A DNA stretch of 64,000 bases from Zygnema circumcarinatum SAG 698-1b (taxonomy: Eukaryota > Plantae > Zygnematophyceae), in contig CM074815.1 in NCBI GenBank assembly GCA_037447605.1, forward strand, positions 2,480,001-2,544,000, given 5' to 3'. Shown piece after piece: positions 4,069-64,000 of this stretch. Positions within the stretch are counted from its first letter, which is position 1. Each line of letters opens with the position of its first letter. Made by a program: the position numbers and the translations under genes. The notes under the pieces are model-generated. The model was not told the origin of the DNA. It saw nothing but the letters and a program-made list of their open reading frames with translations, and did not search any database.

Positions 4069-4270
4069 AAGCATGAAGAAGACAAAGGGATGTGGCATTA
4101 ATCTCACGATGGCGATGCCATCAAATGTAATGGACAAAATCAGCATGGGGAACCACGAGGAATTGGTCGCAAAGGACCTAAGGTCAACGGAAAAAACTCG
4201 GAGCGGAACGCTACGACTACTCGCAGTCGCAACAACGCTTCAAGCCCTCCTTCGAAGCAGCCGCAAAGGT
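4069..4270 (+). repeat. Dispersed repeat, homologous to 54895-55095 in inverted orientation
   Basis: Both loci share GGATGTGGCATT.ATCTCAC.ATGGCGATGCCATCAAATGTA..TGGACAAAATCAGCATGGGGAACCACGAGGAA.TGGTC.CAAAGGACCTAAGG. Confidence 0.85.
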
Positions 4271-4395
4271 CGCCGATGTGAGGCACATCGCGCGGAGGGA
4301 GGGAGCGGCGGAAGGCCAATCGGCACGGTCACATGAAGACATGGGTACAGGAATCAAGGATCATGAGTTTCAACAAAACTCGCAGTATTCAGAAA

Positions 4396-27009: not shown

Positions 27010-29913
27010 CTGCAGTTCCAGTTCCAGTTCCAAATTCAGATGGCGGATGCAGTTGCAGGATATACAGATTATTAAGTTTCAGTTTCAGGTGAAAGGAACA
27101 GACCGAAGGCATTTTTGAGGTTTTGGTCATGAAAGAGTGGAAAGACATTCACGGCGTGTTTGATGCAAAAAGGTGAAATTTTTACGAATTAAGAAACGCA
27201 GACTATGCAGATAGAGGCTTGTTAGGCCAAGTCGACATGAAAAAAACAGATGCGGAAAAATGCCTGAAAGGGCCATGCGAATCCGGATTCTTCTCTGAAG
27301 GGAGATCATAAATAAGACATACCCTATAAGACTTCAGAAAAGAGTCCTCTCTTTATCCGTGCAAGTAGGAGAGATGAGAAAGAGAGAGCACCAGATAGAG
27401 AGAAAGAGGGAGGATTTGAACAGGAACATGAAAAGTAACTGCAGAAAAATGCAGAAGCCATATTCACACCTCCTCCCTATGTCAACCTTTTCCTGCTCTA
27501 CATTTCTTTCTTCTCCCTCATTTCTACTACCCCTTTAACGCCCCCTACTCCCTCCTTTATCTGTTCTCCTATTTTCCCCTCTCCCCCTCTCGCTCCTACC
27601 CCTGAACCCAAGTTCTCTCCACCCTCTCCTACGCCGCCACCCTCCCCCCCCACCCTCCCCCCTTACTCCCCCAACCATCTCTCTTCCATCCTCTCCCTGT
27701 CCCCATCCATCACTCCATCCTCCCCCCTCCTTCCCCTCTTTCACCCTCTCCCCCATCCTCCCCCCACTCACTCCCCCTTTCCCCCTCCTTCCTCTCCCCA
27801 CCACCCACCGCCCCTCCTTCCCCTCTTCCACCCTCTCCCCCCCTCCCCCTCCTCCCCCTCTCACTCCCCCTTTCCCCNNNNNNNNNNGGGGGGGGGGGGA
27901 GAGGGGGCTGAGGTTGCGGGAGGCCGGGGGAGGAGGGCTAACCCTAATTGGTTGGGTGAGAAGGGGAATGTGGGGGGTCAGAGTTTTTGGGGTTCATTGG
28001 ATGCGGCGAAAGAGGGGCTTGCATGGGAGAGGGGGGGGGGCGGGGGGGAGTGGGAGGGGGGATGAGAGGGGGGAGAGGGAGAGGGAGAGAGGGGGGTGTG
28101 GAGAGCAGACTGAGCTCGGCAGGAGATTTGGGCAAAAGGCCGCGGAGAGCACCTGCTGGGAGCGCCTGCTTTGGGGGGGGCGTGCGACGCCACGATACGT
28201 CGCATTACGTCGCAGGACGTCGCAGAGGGTCGTACTGAGTCGCACGAAATCGCGTGACGTCTCATCAAGTCGTCGCTTATCGTGCGACTCCATTCGCACG
28301 GTGGACTTATATAACGTTTAAGAAATCGTACATAGCAACTGAACGTTTCGTTTACAAGTTTACTCTTGATTGACTGATTTTTAACTCATAAGTCTTTGCG
28401 TGCGAGGCGTGCGACGGAAGTCAGTCGCGCGGAAGAATAGCGACCGACTCCTCTACGGCAGATGATGCGCCACGTGGCACTAAGAAGCTCTAACAGCCGT
28501 CGATCTTCAGTCTGATTCCGTACAGAAGACAAACTGTACGAACTCCAGCGTTTCACGGGAATTCGCCGCTGGTCGCCGCCAGCTGGCGTGAGGCCATTGA
28601 CCAGCCGCGAAACCCTCCGGGAGAGGGGAACCAACGGGCAGGGGACACGTGGCATATGTCAGAATCGGGCAGATTTTTGTTTGAAAGAAAAGTTGTAAAC
28701 CGCATTTGACAAGAACAATTTGGCCTGTTGGAAAATTTCCAAACATTAAGATTTCCGTTAACGACGTGAGTTTTTTGCCAAAGGGCCCCAAAGTGAAAAT
28801 ATTCGTAGACGACAATTCTTTTCTGTCCGATTCTTTAGCTCTTTATGGCAGGACTCTGCGCCGCCATTTCGAATCTCGCCGTTTGTCAGAAACAAATAAG
28901 TAAATTTTTGTCGTTATCTAAAACAGCTCTAACTCATTGAAAGTGAAGTTAATTTTAAGTCAACGGATGTCAAATTTGTCACCGATGCTGCCAACAATCT
29001 GCATTCACACGTGCGTTCAAGCCTGCCCGCCGACACAAAATCCAAAATTCGCCTTTCAGATCATGTTTTCGAAAGAACACGTGGCAATAGCCGCAGGTAT
29101 TCGTACACTGCCCGTTGACGGATCTCCAAGTAATGACAAGAAACTGTCTGGCAGATTTATATACGACAAAAAGCACAGTGTACGCTTCCGTCAACGCACC
29201 TCTCGAGCCAGTGGCAAATTCACTACACGAACACGACTCACACTTGTTAAACGGAAAACGACAAGGTTATCTTATAAAAGGGGAATATATCCGACGAGAT
29301 CACGTGCTTTGGCAGGTAGCGACTGAAAGTCATTTTTAGAGCGGCCCTATTGAAATTCATAACTCAATCAGTTTTAAATGTTTGGGCAGAGCCTCTCCTC
29401 GCGGGCAGCGGCTCGCGGCGGAAATTTTCGTTCCACAAAATTCCAACGGAGTCCGACGGACCGTTTTTCGTGCTGCGTGACGTAGAATTTTCTCCAATTA
29501 AATGCCACCACCTGGATGAAATTGGAATACAGTACAAGAATGTCGACACGTTGCAGAAAATAGAGACTCAGTTTCCAGTTGGACAGAACGCCTCCATGAA
29601 GAATCCACGAAACTGGAACTGCAACAGTGGCGGTCGCACATGTGGCAGGTGCTTTGTAGATATAGTTCTACAACCAGTTCATGACCCCTCCCGTATCGAC
29701 AATATCCGAAACGAATGATATCGGGATATATCAAGCTTATATCGGAACGGTAATCGCTTCCAAAAAATACGAAGCCCCTTTCGACAAAGCGTCGATACAT
29801 TTGACCCAAAAAAAAAAAAAAAAAAGTCCTCCGGTCGTCTGATCCTCAATTATTTACAAAATTTTAAAGCTTTATTCACGATTTCGTCGACAAAGAATAA
29901 CTACCTACGTCAT

Positions 29914-43000: not shown

Positions 43001-43641
43001 CTTAATTCCAAAGACAATCTTTAGGAGTGGGAGATCTCACGGCTGATTTTGAAGGAAAAGACGAGAAATCGAATACTTTAAAACACATATCCAAAGAGCC
43101 CTATCCACCAGTTTCTCACCTCCAACTTTCCGGTCACACGATCGTCGAATCGAACACCAAACGCAAGCAGCAAATCACACGAATCGATGGCATAGTTTGC
43201 GTAAACGGTTCCATGCATTCCCAACATGTGAAGGGCGAGATCCTCCGTTTGGTCATACACTCCCAATCCCATCAAAGTGGATGCCACTGGAATTTTTGTT
43301 GATTCTACAAAAGCTCTCAACTCTTCCGCCGCTTGCAAACAGCCGCCCCCCAAATATACAACTGGCTTTTTTGCTCCTTGCAAAAGTCGAATAACTTGCT
43401 CAACTTGGTCTTTCTGAGGGGGAGGGGGCATTCTCTGGAGGTAGCCCTGAAGCTTCATCGGCTGCGCCCAATCAGGGACTGCCATCTGTTGCTGAATATC
43501 CTTCGGCACGTCGATAAGGACAGGTCCGGGTCTTCCGGAAGCAGCCAGGAAGAAAGCTTCACGAACTGCAATGAAGGAGGAAAAATAAGGTGTACTTTAG
43601 AGAAAAAGCGAGCATAACGTTGTTGTGTGTACGAGAGAGGT

Positions 43642-43680
<39 letters not shown>

Positions 43681-45257
43681 GTAGCCCACACCTATGCGCG
43701 GAATGTCGTCAATGTCCATGACGAGATAATTGTGTTTTGTAATCGACCGAGTGACCTCCACAATGGGAGTTTCCTGGAAGGCGTCCGTCCCGATCACTGT
43801 CCTGGGCACCTGTCCAGTTATGGCTACCAACGGAACGGAGTCAAGGAGCGCGTCAGCCAGCCCGGTGACCAGGTTCGTTGCACCTGGACCTGAAGTGGCA
43901 ATGCACACTCCCACCCTTCCAGAAGCTTTGGCATAGCCCTCGGCGGCAAAAATCTCTCCCTGCTCGTGGCGGCAGAGAATGTTGCGGATGGCTTTCGAGC
44001 GCGTAAGGGCCTGAACTAAAAAAAAACAAGAAATGGGGTAAGGTGAAGGTATATGGTGAAAATGAGTACTAAAAAGGTTACGAGGAAGGGAGTTAGGATG
44101 GAAGCAAGGAGCGATAGCTCAGCCAGTTAGCACCTCTGAACTGGCAGCAGTGATTGATAACAATGGCATTTTCCAGTTTCATGTTCAATTATAAATTAAG
44201 ACAATCAATTGGAAAAGGCAGAATTCACTATTTCTAAGCGTTCACGCATCACGCGGGACCGAGCACTCTCCCCATCAACCAAGGTCCGTTGATAGCTGTA
44301 AACTACACACCCTCACTCCTCTGACACTTCTCTAGCTCACATCCTCTCGCCTCTCCAGCGTCTTCTTTCTCACTCTCGTCCCTCTCCCTTTTCTCCCCTC
44401 CCCCTTCCATCTCTCCCTTCTCACCCCTTCTCCCCCATCCCGTCTCCTCCCCCATCCCCTCTCCTCCCCTCTCCTCTCCTCCCCATTCTCTCCCACCCCC
44501 CCCTCTCACTCTGCCCCCTCCCCTCTCCTCCCCCCTTCACTCCCCTCTCCCCACTCCTCTGCCCTCTCACCTCCCTTCCCCTCTGCACTTCCCACTCCCT
44601 CTCCCCACTCCTTTCCCCACTCCTCTGCCCCTCTCCATTCTCCAACCCAAAGCACACCAGACCGCAAACCAGCCACCGAACCCAAACAAATTCAAACCCA
44701 CAAACCAGCCCACGACGCAAACCACACAATTACCCGCACAGCCCGAAACCCCACCAGCCCGCCGCTCCCCCATAGCCCGACCCTCTCATTCCCGCAGTTC
44801 CCACCTGGTGAATTTCCATGGAGGCCCCCCCCGGGTACGCGAACACGGTCCTCACTCCCTCCCTCTCCAGCGCCTCCACGAGGATATCGCAGCCCTTGCG
44901 GGGCTCGTCCGCCCCAAACCGCGAAACGAACTCCCTGGGAGTCGGCGCCACCAGGGACTTCCCGCTGCTGACACGTGGCGTGGTCAGATCCTGCTGGGTG
45001 TCCAGCTCGGGTGACCGGAGGGCGACACCTGTCGTCGCGGAGCCGAAGGAGGAGGGGGTCTCCACGGAGGGCGGGAGCTCCGAGCGGGCGGCGATTGCCA
45101 CGTGGCGCTTGCTGCGGAGGGCATGGAGGGAAGGGGGAGCGGCTCTCTGCTTCAGTTCCGTTGAACTGCTTCCGACGGAGAAATTCGCGGAAGAAAGGTC
45201 TTCCGGGAGGGAGGAGGGGGCGAAGGGCTTCAGGAGGGCATGGCCCAACGCAGCCAT
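40077..45257 (-). CDS. ALS: Acetolactate synthase (AHAS) catalytic subunit with plastid transit peptide
   Basis: Ten exons: 45257-44805, 44010-43692, 43565-43120, 42939-42724, 41963-41810, 41412-41300, 41035-40934, 40798-40712, 40408-40304 and 40157-40077. Motifs [49 protein letters not shown] and [10 protein letters not shown]. Confidence 0.97.
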
Positions 45258-50099: not shown

Positions 50100-50640
50100 A
50101 AGTGAGTTTAATTTCTCGATATGTTTTACTCAAATTAACGTTTAGAATAGTTTGACTTGCTTCCAGATTTTCGTTGTTGAAGGATGATGTTGTCTCTTAC
50201 ATACTGTGTCGCTCCACCTGTTTTCTGATAGCGTATGGATGTAATTGATATAGATTTTCGACGCTTATCTCTTCTCTGCCTCATTTCTCAAATGTTTCAT
50301 TTGAAATTTACTGCTGATTAGACTTGTTTCATGCAGTGTGCCGCTGGCGATGTGCGGCCCTGGAGGAGAGGGATGCTGTTGCCGGTACCTGATCCGTACG
50401 ACTGACCATCAGCATGTACATGTACAGAAGTTTGATGACGACTCAGTTTTCGTTTAGTTCCGGAGACTGGAGCTGTGTGTAAATACAGACCTCGGGGAAA
50501 GTTGGAATCCTGTCGACAAGCAAACTAAGTGGTTGATTGAGATGAAGTGAAGTGATGGATGTTGATGTTGATGTTAGATGTTGATTTGTTGTAACAATGA
50601 TTGGTTGATGATTATTTTCATGCAGAGATGTTTCCTTTTT

Positions 50641-50890
50641 AAAGTAAACAAGAGAAGCTTCCTTTTAAAAGTGAACAAGAGAAGCTTCCTTTTTTAAAGT
50701 GAACAAAAGAAGCTTCCTTTTTTAAAGTAAAGAAGAGAAGCTTCCTTTTGTAAAGTAAACAAGAGAAGCTTCCTTTTTTAAGTAAACAAGAGAAGCTTCC
50801 TTTTTAAAAGTAAACAAGAGAAGCTTTCTTTCTTAAAAAACAAGAGAAGTTTCCTTAGTAATCAAGAGAAGCTTCCTTTTTGAAGTAAAC
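50641..50890 (+). repeat. ~27 bp tandem repeat x9 (AAAGTAAACAAGAGAAGCTTCCTTTT)
   Basis: Read directly. Most units carry the palindrome GAAGCTTC. Confidence 0.92.
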
Positions 50891-51610
50891 AATATTCAAT
50901 AGTTTCAACATAGAATTAGCAGCACAGCACCAGTTTCTGACAAAGCCAAGATCACAAGAAAATGTTTGAGCTCAACGACATCCAAAGAAAGGTCGCCCTT
51001 CTCTTAATATTCAAATGTGTCAACAAAGCCATAAGAGGTTCATGACCCCTATGTGCGAACGAGGAAACTTGAACAAAGGCTAAATAAAAACTGTAAAATC
51101 CACAAAATCTGCAAAATAGTATAACATAAAGCAACATATCTCCTGCACTACTTCTAGCTTTTGTTGATATATTTGCGCGAACAAAGTATCCTCAACAAAA
51201 GATAGAGCCGTGCCACGTGACAAAAAACGACGGTCGAGCGATGGTCCATCAGACTCCCCTCTCAAACAAGAGGCAACTCGGCAATAACGGGGGCTCCCGC
51301 TTCTCTGCATTAAGGCCTGCAAGTGCAAGAGTAAATATTAGTTAGTAAAGAATATTTTGATAGACATTAGACTGCGCCTCTCTATACTTCCTTCCTCCTC
51401 GTCTCTCCCTCCCGCTCTCTCGTCTCCCTCCCTCTCCCTCCCCCCTTTCTCATTCTCACTCTCACTTCCCCATCTATCCGCTCTCTCCCACGCTCTCTCT
51501 GTACCCACACCAACCGTGCGAGATTCTAAGCACACCATCGGCAAACAATCTAATACTTGCCCTCTGCATTTATAGAGTCCATCATTCAGGAGCAGTTCAA
51601 AGGCAGGCAC

Positions 51611-53543
51611 TCACTTCCAATATGGGCAGTTGATGCTTCTGAACCGATTGTTGTAGCACTTGTTCATGCAAGTCTCGTAGTTGTTCGGCCATGACTTGGG
51701 AGTCCTCTGCTTCACGGGCGTCTCACCCGTCTGCGTGGTCGCAGCATCCGAACACGCGACCTGACAATTGACGAAGTTCTTATAACACCTATTTGGCGGC
51801 GCCTCGGGCCACGGAAACGGGCACGGGCTCGAACAGCTCTTGCTACAACCTTTACAGGGAGGGAGACCGGCACGTTTTTTGCAGCAATCGGCGCACGTCG
51901 GACAGCGTCCGGCCGTGGCGGAAGAACAGATCCCGGGACAGCCCCCGCAGTTAAGGGCACAAAGCGATTGGAAGTTGATGCCGTACCAACAGTAGTATTC
52001 CTTCGGGGCTCTGTCACAGTCACAGGAGGCGGATGTCATGGTGACGTTGGGGCAGGGGACCTGAAGGAGCTGCCCGGGGACAAGGGTCACCTCCTGGACG
52101 ACCTTTCCAGGGAAGTTTACAGCGGCGATTTCGGAGGGAGAAGTGATGCAGCGGCGGGAGAGGCGGACGGGGATGGCGCTAAGGGTGTCTGATGGGAGGA
52201 CGACGTACGGAATGGTGGAGGATGGCCTGCCGACAGGCCTTAGGACGGCGGGAGGGAAGGTGGGAGGAGAGGAGGGAGGAGGTGAAAGGACGGCCGGCGT
52301 TGGGACGGGAGGAGGGAAGGGTGGAGGTGAGGAGGGAGGGGAAGAGGGAGGGGGTCCTAAGGGAGGAGACGTGGGAGGTACGGAAAGGGAAAGCGAAAGC
52401 CCATCCAGGAAAGCCTCGTCATATGGATCGTCAATGGGGTCAGCTGGCGTAGTGGTAAAGGTGGGAGAGGGCGCAGCAGGGGGGGGAACAGGGAAGGGCA
52501 GAGGGGTAGAGGGAAAAGTGGGAGGGGCAGCAAATGAGGGAGGAGAAGGTGCAGGAGGAGAGGGTGGGGGTGGGGAAGGGGAAGGGGGAGAAGGAGAGGG
52601 TGGGGGAGGGGAGCTTAGGGATTTCTTGCGCAGGCAAATAACCTGTCCGCTCTGCAGATATGGCGGTTGGCACTGCCAGAAGAACCACACAATAGTCAAT
52701 TGGTTAGGAGAGCATATGAGGTAGGCAGCTCCCTTCTTATATTTGTTAAATACAAGAAACATGATGATGATGATGATGATGATTTGTATGATCTTAATTA
52801 AGATCATACAAATCTGAAACCATATCTAAAATTCTTACAATAGGTGCCGACGAATGAGCATTTGAATTTCTGCCTTTTCGAGGATTCTGGCTGTGTAGAG
52901 GGTTCCATACCTGAAGCCCGGGATTGAGTGCGAAGAAGTCGAAGGGGCTGATTCCGTTGTCAAGCCAAATGCGAGGACACGTGTCATTCTGGTTGACGAT
53001 GTACGACTCCTCGCAGTCCGCCGTAACACGCTCAAGTTTGACCCTCCCGCCGGTGCTGAGAATCACACCTGAGATGCCCAGAAAGAGAAAATTATGATAA
53101 ACAAACACTTAAATATAAACCTTCACAGTGAAAAAATAAAGAAAGGGAGGGAGGAAGCATGCGAAGAGGTAGAAGAACAAAACGAGAATTAGAGGAGGGA
53201 ATGTCATTGAGGAGAGCGGCTGCCTTGAACTCACGGGGTGGGAGGACAGCAAAGCAATTGAGGTTGGGGTTGAGTGGTGCCAAATCTCCGGGGCTCATAT
53301 TGTACGCTGCTTCGATCGACTGCAGATATAATAAAGCACGCAAAGAAATAAATGTAAGTGTCCAAAACTGAGCTCGATCCCTCTCCCAGCCTCCCGCTCC
53401 CCCATCCTTCCACTCTCTCCATCTCGTCAGAGCAGGAGGGGAGTGGCCTTTCCCACCTCGCACGTGTCGCCAGGCTTGACGATGTGCGTCGTGTCACTGC
53501 TGCACGTGATGAACCCTTCCGAATTGAACCCCGTGAATCGGCC
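51611..53543 (-). CDS. LysM x3 + Ser/Pro-rich extensin-like linker + Cys-rich C-terminal domain (probably the 3' half of the papain gene at 54112)
   Basis: Exons 53543-53457, 53319-53235, 53068-52911 and 52672-51611 splice in frame. LysM1 HIVKPGDTCESIEAAYNMSPGDLAPLNPNLNC. LysM2 YIVNQNDTCPRIWLDNGISPFDFFALNPGLQC...LQSGQVICL. LysM3 YVVLPSDTLSAI...IAAVN...LVPGQLLQVPC. About 22 Cys in the last ~150 aa. Confidence 0.85.
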
Positions 53544-53584
53544 CTGCAGGATCGGGTACAGCAACCGATGTCAATTCCAATCTC

Positions 53585-53684
53585 NNNNNNNNNNNNNNNN
53601 NNNNNNNNNNNNNNNNNNNNNNNNNNNNNNNNNNNNNNNNNNNNNNNNNNNNNNNNNNNNNNNNNNNNNNNNNNNNNNNNNNNN
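53585..53684. other. Assembly gap (100 N, true size unknown)
   Basis: N run that interrupts the papain/LysM locus. Confidence 1.
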
Positions 53685-53860
53685 CTCAACGGACAGTGTT
53701 AAGCTCGCCCTTGTTCAAACTTTACAGAACGAGCCAGCATGCATGCACCGCGAACTTCTCTTATCTCTCTTCCATAGCATTCATTTCTCAGTCTTCCTTT
53801 GAACTATGCATGCATGTGTATGCATGCATGCAGGCCGCACGGCGGCGCGCGGCCACGTAC

Positions 53861-54112
53861 GTCCTTGGCGTCCATGACGCGCGTGATGACGCCCGTCGCC
53901 CGCCAGTCGACGGCGCCCTTCGCCGCGGTGATGTCGTACGCGTGGTACAGCGACGAGGCGGGCGCGTCCTGGAGCCGCCGCGCCGCCTCCGGGGACTGCA
54001 GGAACTCGCGGAAGCTCAAATAGTCCCTCTCCCCAACCCCGCCGCTTGCAGCCATCGCCCCGCAACCAAAACTGATGCTCAGTAGAAGAAAAGCGACCTT
54101 GAGAGTCGCCAT
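53861..54112 (-). CDS. Papain-like (C1A) cysteine protease, exon 1, copy 1 (remainder in the N gap)
   Basis: Signal peptide MATLKVAFLLLSISFGCGAMA, then AVDWRATGVITRVMDAKD and a GT donor. Near-identical to 62987-63152. Confidence 0.8.
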
Positions 54113-55459
54113 GGCTGAAAGAAAATCCGGCACCTCAAACGAATATGATAGATCACCCTCTTTCTCTCTTTCTCTCTCCCTCTCTCTCTCTTCCCCCTTC
54201 TCCCACCACTCCTCCCCGTCGAGTAGAGGCGGCGGCCGCTGCTTGCTTGCAGAGAGGCGGCTGGCGGGCTCTTATAAGCGCCGCCGGGGCGCTCGGCCGT
54301 GTCGGTGGGTCGGCGCGGGCGTGCGGGTAGCAGCTCTGTTTTGTCGTTTTGCTAATGAGAATAGTCATTTCCTTGGAAAAACGAATGGTCGCTGGAGGGT
54401 GCACTCGGGGGAGGGCGATTCGGGCGGGGGCGAACGAGAATTGTCGTTTGTACGAAAGGAGGCACGTCGCGCTCCGTGACTGGTTGTGCTGGTGGATTTC
54501 GCCGTGCCGTTCCTGCTTCTACTCAATAGGACAAAGTTGACTTCTGTCGGACTAATTTGTCGTTTTCCAGACAATTTGCTGGATCGTGAGTTCGTGACAA
54601 AGATTGAAGCTCTGGCGTCTCATTTGCGTGACGTGGCACCGTCTGAGAACTGCCGTACTGATTCATGTAATCAACGGCATGCCGCACGGCGCTTGGACTG
54701 TGCGCCAAGCGAGATCTGCTGCCAACTGCCTGCGTGCTGTGAACTGCACTAGCGATTCCTTGTGGCCGTTCACTGTTCATGGTTCCAACTGTGAACGCGA
54801 CGGAGAACGGCCTTCAGAGAAACGGTTGGGGTTCTGGGCTGTTTGGCGTACGGTTGGGATTGTACACATGTACGGACTTATTGTACGGAATAAACTTGCC
54901 TTCGCGGCTGCTTCGAGGGAGGGTTTGAAGCGTTGTGGAGCCTCGGCGTAGCTTTCCGCTCATACCTTTTTTCTTTTGTCCTTAGGTCCTTTGTGACCAT
55001 TTCCTCGTGGTTCCCCATGCTGATTTTGTCCATGTACATTTGATGGCATCGCCATAGTGAGATCAATGCCACATCCTTTATCTTCTTCATGCTCTTCGAA
55101 CATTTTGGCATTTTTGTGCTGATTTGTTCCATGTACATTTGATGACATCATCGCCATCGTGATATCAATGCCACATCCCCTCCCCCCCTTCGCTTGTTGT
55201 ACATGGACACGATGCTTTTCACGATTGGCGATTGCCTTTGCACGATGGCGTGCAAAGGCCACGGCCACGGCCTTCGCTGCTGCTTCTAGGGCTGCGTTGT
55301 TGTGCCTAGGCGTAGTTTTTCGCTCCTAGCTTCGTTTTATTGTGTTTCGGTCCTTTGTGACCAATCCTTCGTGGTTCCACATTTTGCCTTGGTCCATGTA
55401 CATTTGATGGCCTTGCCATTTCGAGTTCAATGAAAGTTTGTCCCCCTCATGCTGAAGGG

Positions 55460-59778: not shown

Positions 59779-61309
59779 ATGGCGGGAAAGCTCGACGCGG
59801 CGGCAGCGGGTGAGGCCCGTCCCTGAACCCTAGAACTGAAGGGGGGGGAGGGGGGGAGGGGAAGGAAACACTCTCTCCCCATCTCTCTTTCCTCTCCCTC
59901 TCTTCCTCTTTCGCTCCCTTGAAATTTTTACCTTTGCCCTCTCTCACACCCTCTCCTTCGCTCCACTTCCTCCTCCCTCGCCTTCCACCCTCTCTGCCTC
60001 TCCCACTCTCCCCTTCCCCTTTCTCCTTCTCCCTTGCTTCCTCTCCCCCCCTCCTTTCCCTCTCCCTCTCCCTCCCTCTTTGCTCTCTCACTCTCCTTCT
60101 GTCCTTCTCCGCATTTCCTCTCCCCCGCCTCCTCCCTCTCACACTCTCTCCCTGTTTTTCCAATTCCCATCTCCCCTCTCCCTGCCCCGTTCCCTATTGT
60201 CACATCTCTCCCTCTGCTTTCAGGGGCCGCCTCATCAATAAACTCTACATATTAATAAAAAAAGCTCTACTTTTTCTCATTTTTCCTGCCGTTTCCGCCT
60301 AGATGCAGGTCAAATGATGCGTGTCCCGTTCCATGTTCGCCTCCATTCCTTTATTCTCAAATATGGTGCTTTATTTCTTCAACAGCGAGATGGTACAATT
60401 CTACGAACCGGGTTCCTCGGCGCCATGGCCAGAGACCCCCGTCCTTCCAACGAAAGCTTCACCAAATTTGAGACTGCGACGCGTGACGTTACGCTTCTAT
60501 GTGAAAATCGAAAGCTTGAAGTTCGAATATTCCTCCCAAAATTGGCTCTCTCTTTGAAACCCTCCGCCAAGCTCCCCATTGCTCTCTTCTTCCACGGCGG
60601 CGGCTTCTCCTTCGCTTCAATGAAGGACGGAGTTTACGATTCTATGTGTCGGAGAATTGCGTTCTATGTGGGAATGCTCGTGGTTTCCGTTGAGTATCGA
60701 CTCGCCCCAGAGAGCCCCTACCCTTCCGCATATGATGACGGGTATGAAGCTCTAAAATGGCTGAAAAATAAAGCGATAATTGAAGATAAATGGGTTTCTA
60801 AATATGCAGATATTTCTAACTGCTTTTTATTTGGAGACAGCGCCGGCGCAAATTTAGCTCACCATGTTTCCCTACGAGCTCGAGAGGTCGATTTTTCGCC
60901 TCTTCAAATCCGCGGTCGGTGCCTCATGTTTCCTTTTTTTGGGGGGACCGATAAGCTGCAATCAGAAATTGAGTTTTCCAATGGCTACATTGTTGGTGAA
61001 AAAATCTTAAATACGATGTGGAGGAATTTTTTGCCGAAAGGGGCAGATCAGAATCACATGGCGGCCAATCCCCTCGCGCCAGCTCATCCTTCTCTGAAAA
61101 ATCTGCAGCCCACATTGGTCCAGGTGGCAGGCTACGACTACCTCAAGGACAGAGGAATTTTGTATGCGAACGCGTTGAAGGAGGCGGGGGTTGATCTGGA
61201 GTTGATCCATTATCCACACATGATCCATTGTTTCCCACTTTTTGGGGTTAACTCGGACTCATTCTTCTCAGACTTGACCCAATTTGTGCGCCGCGTTTCG
61301 GTCAATTGA
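59779..61309 (+). CDS. Carboxylesterase of the HSL/CXE family, GID1-related
   Basis: Short exon 59779-59809 (MAGKLDAAAAG) is spliced in phase 1 to 60303 or 60309 and continues to 61309. Motifs FFHGGGF, VSVEYRLAPE, AYDDG, FLFGDSAGANLAHHV, PFFGG, GYDYLKD and MIHCF. Confidence 0.93.
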
Positions 61310-62068: not shown

Positions 62069-62828
62069 CCCCACCCAGCGGACCTGTGCCATTCCGTACC
62101 GCTACACAAACCGTGACGGACGGCGCGAATCGCCTTCCAAATCCGTGCGATCGAAAAATCTACAACCATACCGTATAGTAGATCTAAACCCCAGTCGCGA
62201 AGCGTAACTTCCCGGATACGCAATCCTGTTGGCCGCGTTATCATTGGTTAAAAAGATCCCAACGCGATCTGTCAGTCAAAGGGTGCATACGTGGCCAGAA
62301 TATAGTGCCCATTTGCGTTGATAAGATACTACGAGATCCTGCAAATTAGATTCGATGAGATTTCTTCAGATCCTAAATATCTTCGGTTACCAGATTGACG
62401 TCGACCTTGACAGAAGTCAACTCCGCTCGGTTGGCCTGAAGTCAAGATTCGTATGATCCAATGAAAAGGACACTGTACAGCACCAATAAGCGACTGCCAC
62501 GGCTACAAATCTTGTCGGAATGCGGACGTCATCACCTGCTCAGATAAAACCTCCCCCAAGAGGACCCTCTCACGACGCATCGCATTCTAGGGTCCCGTTT
62601 GACGGCGGGCCGCGTGTCGCCGCAAAACGACAAATTTGAGCAGCTCGCGCCGCCGGCCAACGGCGCCGCCGCCGCCGCCACGCGACGGCTTTTAAAAGGT
62701 GCGTCCGCGCACTCACAAGCAGCGGCCTCTCTTGTGAGGCGAAAGGCGAGGCGGAGAGGAAGGGAGAGAGAGTGAGAGAGAGAGAGAGAGAGGGACAGAA
62801 AGATAATACGGATTTCTTCTTCTAAGCC

Positions 62829-63878
62829 ATGGCTTCTGCAAAGTTTTGTGTTCTCGTTCTGAGCCTCAATCTTTTCAGAGCTGCAATTGTTGCAGCACGC
62901 GAGGGCTACCTAGGACCTTTGGACAAATCAACGGAGAGATGGCGGCTAAGTGGGCGGCGGCTCTCTGACGGCGGGGCTGGAGAGAAGGACTATTTGAGCT
63001 TCCGCGAGTTCCTGCAGTCCCCGGAGGCGGCGCGGCGGCTCCAGGATGCGCCCGCCTCGTCGCTGTACCACGCGTACGACATCACCGCGGCGAAGGGCGC
63101 CGTCGACTGGCGGGCGACGGGCGTCATCACGCGCGTCATGGACGCCAAGGACGTACGTGGCCGCGCGCCGCCGTGCGGACTGCATGCATGCATACACATG
63201 CATGCATAGTTCAAAGGAAGACTGAGAAATGAATGCTATGGAGGAAAGATGAGAGAAAGTTCACGGTGCGCGCATGCTGGTTCTTCCTGAAAAGTTTAAA
63301 CAGGCGTGAGCTTAACACTGTCCCTTTACGTGCGTGGTGCGCAGTGCAACAGCTGTTGGGCGCTGACGGTGGCTGACGTGATCGCGCTGCACTACGCCAA
63401 GGAACAGGGGTGGGGCAACCTCCCCCAGCAGCTGGGCAAGCAGTGGTACTTTTCCCCGCAAGGGTCCGCACAGCAGATCGCGGACTGCATGGGAGTGAAC
63501 ATCTGCGCGCAGGGCTACCCCGAGTGGGCCCTCTTCTACGCCACCGTCAATGGGGGGCTCACGATCGAGGACCGCTATCCGTACAATCCGGAACCAGGGG
63601 CAGAAAATCAGGAGTGCAAGAGAGACATCGCGGAAAAACCAACGCTCAAGGTAATCCGTCATCCGGATATCCACAAGCTAAGAGAGTGAGTCAGTTGTGA
63701 TGGATAAATTGACAACTTTACGAACCATTGGAAGGTTGAGGTCTAAGGGGAGTTCGCGATGGCATGCATGCAGGTGACGAGGTGGGAGCAAGTCCCCGCA
63801 TTCGACGAAGAAGCCCTCCGGAAGGCGGTGTCGATGAAGCCGGTCCTTGCATTCATTTCTGCATCCGGGGACTTTGAG
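62829..63878 (+). CDS. Papain-like (C1A) cysteine protease, copy 2, running off the window end
   Basis: Exons 62829-63152, 63345-63650 and 63774-63878. Signal peptide, VDWRATGVIT, CNSCWAL (catalytic Cys), SAQQIADC, GGLTIEDRYPY, WEQVP..DEEALRKAVSMKPV. Confidence 0.9.
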
Positions 63879-64000
63879 GTGCGCCCCAACACACACGCTC
63901 CTCTCTCATGACATAGTTTTCTATCCACCTTCATTGAAAGGGAAAAAATTGTATAGTCTTGGATGCTGTGGAAGGCGGCTGGCGTGTAGGTCAGTAAACT

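Follow-up and report, generated by a model that had tools for sequence, protein, structure and literature searches.

A probable papain–LysM gene interrupted by an assembly gap in the alga Zygnema circumcarinatum

Two groups of exons that face each other across an assembly gap in Zygnema circumcarinatum probably belong to one papain–LysM gene, a reading to which a probability of about 0.6 is assigned. The analysis covers a stretch of 64,000 nucleotides, referred to here as the window. A single minus-strand gene, split by the assembly gap, would encode a secreted modular protein. In order, this protein would comprise a signal peptide, a short pro-region, a papain-family (C1A) domain whose sequence beyond the first 17 residues falls entirely in the gap, two LysM repeats (LysM1 and LysM2), a Pro/Ser-rich spacer of about 130 amino acids, a third repeat (LysM3) and a Cys-rich tail of about 150 amino acids (Table 1). 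The link between the halves is drawn because they lie on the same strand, in the right order and with matching phase, because a gene lacking its 3´ part faces exons lacking their 5´ part, and because this architecture is documented in algae. We infer that splicing joins the two halves and that the hidden protease core is intact.

Table 1. Features of the papain–LysM locus (copy A) and of its inverted paralogue (copy B), in window positions
Feature	Position	Strand	Remarks
TATA-like box (ttataag), copy A	54271..54277	-	Putative; ~160 nt upstream of the ATG; aligns with the TTTTAAAAG box upstream of copy B
Exon 1, copy A, 84 codons	53861..54112	-	Signal-peptide-like N-terminus, pro-region, papain positions 5-21
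Intron 1, 5´ part, copy A	53685..53860	-	158/176 identical to intron 1 of copy B; cut by the gap ~21 nt before the equivalent of exon 2 of copy B
Assembly gap	53585..53684	.	100 N, a conventional join of no set size
Intron 3´ end	53544..53584	-	Pyrimidine-rich, cctgcag acceptor; holds the 'GI...YP' stretch of the original prediction; in-frame TGA at 53573-53571
Exon a, 29 codons	53457..53543	-	Phase 0 at both ends; spacer and first strand of LysM1 (THIVKPGDTCE)
Exon b	53235..53319	-	Middle of LysM1; LysM 12.9 bits, profile positions 11-31; ends in phase 1
Exon c	52911..53068	-	End of LysM1, spacer, first two thirds of LysM2; LysM 18.8 bits, profile positions 1-29
Exon d, 353 codons and TGA stop	51611..52672	-	End of LysM2, linker, LysM3, Cys-rich tail
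Pro/Ser-rich linker, 132 residues	52618-52223	-	57 Pro, 22 Ser, two SPPPP
LysM3	52207-52055	-	21.0 bits, E 3e-4, full profile 1-43 (Pfam PF01476)
Cys-rich tail, ~150 aa	52054-51614	-	Follows LysM3
Exon 1, copy B, 108 codons	62829..63152	+	ATG at 62829; own signal peptide; papain N-terminus as in copy A
Exon 2, copy B, 102 codons	63345..63650	+	Begins CNSCWAL (catalytic Cys25); Peptidase_C1 profile positions 23-104
Exon 3, copy B, 35 codons	63774..63878	+	Fits by eye the C1A pattern 'v.gy..vp...e.al..av...Pv.vai.a'

The protease exon and its inverted paralogue

The original prediction placed a signal peptide and the N-terminus of a papain in the exon to the right of the gap. Both assignments hold, and that of the papain N-terminus was borne out by a paralogue (copy B) located in the same window. 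In the gap-side copy (copy A), exon 1 starts with an ATG at 54112, opens with a signal-peptide-like sequence, continues to VDWRATGVITRVMDAKD and ends in phase 0 at a gtacgt donor. Its papain positions 5-21 read VDWR...VMDAKD, with Ala at position 19. Taken alone, this exon had no Pfam match and gave only chance matches in a PDB sequence search, and its short pro-region of 45 amino acids had no match to I29 in Pfam. Copy A is placed in Peptidase_C1 because the near-identical exon 1 of copy B precedes an exon that matches Peptidase_C1 from Cys22 onwards. On this sequence comparison, a gene of the papain family (C1A) is taken to begin with exon 1 of copy A.

Copy B was found by a six-frame motif scan, which located the same peptide near 63105 on the plus strand. 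Its exon 1 ends with the same donor as that of copy A and is followed by an intron of 192 nt, after which the catalytic motif CNSCW is encoded at 63345-63359. Exon 2 of copy B scores 36.6 bits (E 7e-9) against Peptidase_C1 (PF00112), for which the cut-off is 20.7 bits, and aligns to residues 22-91 of cathepsin K, starting from Cys22-Gly-Ser-Cys25-Trp. The ESM Atlas clusters nearest to this exon are all Peptidase_C1, while a metagenome scan with it gave no match. Furthermore, papain numbering runs without a gap across the splice of copy B (V5 D6 W7 R8 ... V16 M17 D18 A19 K20 D21 / C22), which validates both the splice site and the papain reading of exon 1. Exons 2 and 3 are in phase 0-0, and exon 3 alone had no match in Pfam. 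Copy B (62829-64000, plus strand) continues past the end of the window, beyond which its His159, its Asn175 and any LysM exons would fall.

The two copies are inverted paralogues separated by 8.9 kb, and a carboxylesterase gene lies in this interval. They can be aligned from the TATA-like box through a GA-rich 5´UTR and diverged signal peptides as far as the gap edge of copy A, where the alignment stops because copy A meets the gap; the acceptor of exon 2 in copy B lies about 21 nt further on. Copy B carries an insert of 24 amino acids relative to copy A, which gives it a longer pro-region. In the 3´ part of exon 1, 180 of the 184 nt are identical (98%), and the similarity detectable by BLAST extends over 358 nt. 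A tract of about 260 nt over the exon 1/intron 1 border is near-identical between the copies (53770-54030 in copy A, 62983-63243 in copy B), with flanks at 75-85%. This tract looks like the product of recent gene conversion, and it may be the reason for the nearby assembly break. Long GA-rich (GAGAGA) tracts are located at 54140-54215 and 62745-62805, in the presumed 5´UTRs of both protease copies; GAGAGA-like tracts are also found near other ORFs of the window.

The carboxylesterase gene between the copies (60314-61309, plus strand) is a single-exon ORF of 331 amino acids with an alpha/beta-hydrolase fold-3 (CXE/GID1-type). Its best database relative is an unnamed Logan transcript with 63% identity, and its named matches are land-plant carboxylesterases with 30-40% identity. 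Copies of a dispersed repeat, 76-86% identical, occur upstream of copy A (54898-55432) and at 4070-4272; they contain short repeated ORFs (…MAMPSNVHG…) and suggest a degraded mobile element. Further away, ORF pieces at 43078-45257 (minus strand) resemble by eye acetolactate synthase or another thiamine-diphosphate enzyme, and would represent a multi-exon neighbour gene.

LysM exons, linker and Cys-rich tail

The three LysM repeats predicted to the left of the gap were recovered in four exons (a to d) with GT-AG at all borders and with the Pfam scores given in Table 1. LysM3, contained within one exon, marginally passes the gathering score of the LysM family (21.0 against 20.9 bits for PF01476). 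Introns interrupt LysM1 and LysM2 and, because the Pfam scan was run exon by exon, the assignment of these two repeats rests on partial matches together with the pattern common to the repeats, (Y/H)-x-V-x3-D-T-C ... N-P-x-L-x-C, which is seen in the sequence. The intron between exons c and d contains a perfect 34-nt palindrome centred on TTAATTAA (52781-52814, minus strand), directly followed by an (ATC)8 microsatellite (52757-52780, minus strand). About 0.8 kb downstream of the stop codon in exon d, at 50624-50892, an AT-rich stretch contains tandem repeats of about 110 nt that are 80-86% identical.

The segment between LysM2 and LysM3 had been described as an extensin linker. Its Pro/Ser richness and the presence of SPPPP were recovered, but its identity as a true extensin was rejected, since it has two SPPPP motifs only and its Pro-rich tracts lack Tyr motifs. 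Judged by composition, it would be a Pro/Ser-rich spacer that is extensin-like at most and is probably O-glycosylated.

The Cys-rich tail is present as predicted: 23 Cys residues, with one CC pair, are found in the last 204 residues of the protein, and 21 of them lie in the module of about 150 residues that follows LysM3. This tail is the one truly unexplained part of the locus. An exhaustive HMMER search of 1.84 billion representative proteins with the tail gave 0 matches, and a word-index protein search, carried out with the whole of exon d and then with LysM3 plus the tail, returned no match, self included. The tail also yielded nothing in the ESM Atlas (best score, 0.76) and only chance matches in a PDB sequence search. 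In Pfam, nothing except LysM was matched by exon d at E<=1. A granulin identity was considered and rejected, given that there is no Granulin match in Pfam and one CC pair among the 23 Cys. The AlphaFold2 model of the tail, obtained from a single sequence, had a mean pLDDT of 41.6, too poor for a fold search.

The assembly gap and the link between the halves

Two runs of N interrupt the 64,000-nt window, one at 27878-27887 and the other between the two halves of the locus. Intron 1 of copy A is homologous to that of copy B up to the edge of the second run, so the protease exons of copy A are expected within it. By this homology, the gap should hide exon 2 with the catalytic Cys, exon 3 and the exons that carry the His and Asn residues. 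An intact copy A would need at least about 1.2 kb of hidden sequence, made up of exon 2 with its 306 nt, the 105 nt of exon 3, further exons coding for the final 80-90 residues (among them His159 and Asn175) and the introns. Since whole exons are missing by comparison with copy B, the 100 N are a placeholder and the true gap would be larger. That a contig should break at paralogous exons of near-identical sequence is a natural explanation for such a gap. The main practical value of the locus lies here, as it flags an assembly problem in which a gap brought about by a paralogue conceals most of a gene.

On the other side of the gap, about 40 nt separate it from exon a and are read as the end of an intron. 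The TGA found there lies in the LysM frame, so exon a is unable to extend towards the gap, and the sole alternative AG (53583-53582) would put this TGA inside the exon. The original prediction had read a papain C-terminal motif, 'GI-DHRLL-YP', in this stretch and used it to bridge the two halves. This bridge had to be abandoned: it needs an added base and crosses the in-frame TGA, EIGID and HRLLYP lie in different frames, no Cys precedes the GI, and a good acceptor is present at this place. It is possible that a base-calling error at the contig end could restore the motif.

As had also been predicted, exons a to d contain neither a start codon nor a signal peptide, and no hydrophobic stretch comes after the sole Met that they encode, which lies in exon b. 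Upstream exons are therefore needed, and exon 1 of copy A is the only such exon seen on that strand. The phases are compatible across the gap, with exon 1 ending and exon a starting in phase 0, so that one gene is possible. The predicted papain–LysM gene thus stands as regards phase and strand, but the link itself is only plausible, as no transcript, homologue or annotated model was found for it. No homologue linking the halves was returned by the word-index searches with exon d or by the exhaustive HMMER search with the tail. The best match of the neighbouring esterase is only 63% identical, and the genome's own proteins for this region are thus evidently absent from the collection.

Among the alternatives, the one that survives best is that of two adjacent genes on the same strand, which is possible although we consider it unlikely. 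A plain secreted C1A protease would end in the gap, and a separate gene for the three LysM repeats, the Pro-rich linker and the Cys-rich tail would start there with its own promoter and signal-peptide exon. As the 100 N set no length for the gap, it could have room for a stop codon, an intergenic region and also a second promoter; intergenic distances in the window are about 0.7-3 kb, and a gap of about 3 kb would suffice. Secreted LysM-only proteins are common, and the failure to find a sequence that joins the halves is also in keeping with two genes. However, two independent gene ends would then have to hide in one gap, the strand and the phases match those expected for a single gene, and fusions of C1A and LysM domains are documented in algae (PMC6362431, PMC2728734).

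The join may also arise from scaffolding alone. With a scaffolding error the two contig ends would not be neighbours, and with a copy A that is a truncated partial duplicate of copy B only its 5´ end would exist; the LysM exons would then belong to a gene with its 5´ part elsewhere, and we regard this as improbable. A gap of 100 N is the conventional join of no set size, the near-identical tract of about 260 nt is the sort of sequence at which assemblies break or go astray, and just 358 nt of similarity between the copies were detected by BLAST. Nevertheless, the meeting of a 3´-less and a 5´-less gene on one strand and in phase would be a coincidence, and copy A, with its own diverged but homologous promoter region, 5´UTR and signal peptide, is unlike a random fragment. 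Finally, there is a very slight chance that the gap is in truth short and that the protease core was lost by deletion, with exon 1 spliced directly and in frame to exon a to give a secreted LysM/Cys-rich protein with a papain vestige of 17 residues; the 40 nt left of the gap do lack similarity to the 650 nt after intron 1 of copy B, but the intron of copy A is homologous to that of copy B to the gap edge, about 21 nt short of exon 2, and a deletion beginning exactly in the unread stretch would be ad hoc.

Proposed function and comparison with known proteins

In the protein expected from a single papain–LysM gene, the LysM repeats would hold the molecule on GlcNAc-containing glycans (microbial chitin or peptidoglycan, or wall glycoproteins), the proline-rich rod would space the modules in the cell wall, and the C1A domain would cut nearby proteins. 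The function that we infer is that of a glycan-tethered wall protease. A pheromone-induced protease of Volvox reportedly carries 'chitin-binding' repeats of the LysM type. To our knowledge, algal papain–LysM proteases have never been tested biochemically.

The oxyanion-hole residue Gln19 is replaced by Ala in both copies, in a gap-free register (D18-A19-K20-D21 / C22), which makes full protease activity doubtful. The catalytic Cys25, His159 and Asn175 of copy A fall in the gap; in copy B, Cys25 is seen. The proposed role as a glycan-targeted protease in defence or wall remodelling appears weakened by the change from Gln19 to Ala, with His159 and Asn175 out of view. A more speculative reading, which we hold to be doubtful, is that the tail would be a new domain for binding or anchoring, specific to the lineage, and that, together with the change from Gln19 to Ala, the fused protein would have weakened catalysis and would serve as a glycan-tethered 'protease-like' wall protein, as a binder or a decoy, and not as a working enzyme. 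If true, this would represent a new variant of the algal papain–LysM design.

In land plants, the RD21-type papain-like cysteine proteases consist of a protease, a proline-rich linker and a granulin domain, with no LysM. They resemble the locus described here in the succession of a C1A protease, a proline-rich linker and a C-terminal Cys-rich module. In contrast, the Zygnema sequence has no Granulin match, a single CC pair and no match to the I29 prodomain, and LysM repeats are present. The secreted or GPI-anchored LysM proteins of plants (CEBiP/LYM/LYP) share with it the three LysM repeats, the border cysteines and the extracellular location, and they provide the model for the LysM half as a gene of its own. 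Such proteins have a signal peptide of their own and lack a protease, whereas at this locus no signal-peptide exon of the LysM half is visible, and a Pro-rich insert of 130 amino acids and a Cys-rich tail of 150 amino acids are found in addition.

The closest likeness is that to the algal proteins with Peptidase_C1 and LysM domains, which combine a secreted papain-family protease with several LysM repeats. The combination of Peptidase_C1 and LysM has been described as a Chlamydomonas architecture that disappeared along the lineage leading to angiosperms (Zhang et al. 2009, PMC2728734), and C1A+LysM proteins have been reported in algae and non-vascular Archaeplastida as "not retained in vascular plants" (Van Holle & Van Damme 2019, PMC6362431). 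The suggestion that this architecture is foreign to land plants agrees with both reports insofar as vascular plants are concerned. According to the passage of PMC2474614 that cites Amon et al. 1998, the Volvox C1A protease VcPap-11 is induced by the sex pheromone. C1A+LysM proteins of algae are already in print; the locus is probably one more member of this group, and by itself it adds little to the published record. Compared with these algal proteins, the link between protease and LysM repeats is here only probable, running as it does across the gap; LysM2 and LysM3 stand on either side of a long Pro/Ser spacer, no relatives of the Cys-rich tail are detectable and Gln19 is replaced by Ala. 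If the two halves are one gene, it would encode a compact algal papain–LysM protease without an LRR, lectin or EGF head, a form that would be convenient to express and to assay for glycan binding and proteolysis.
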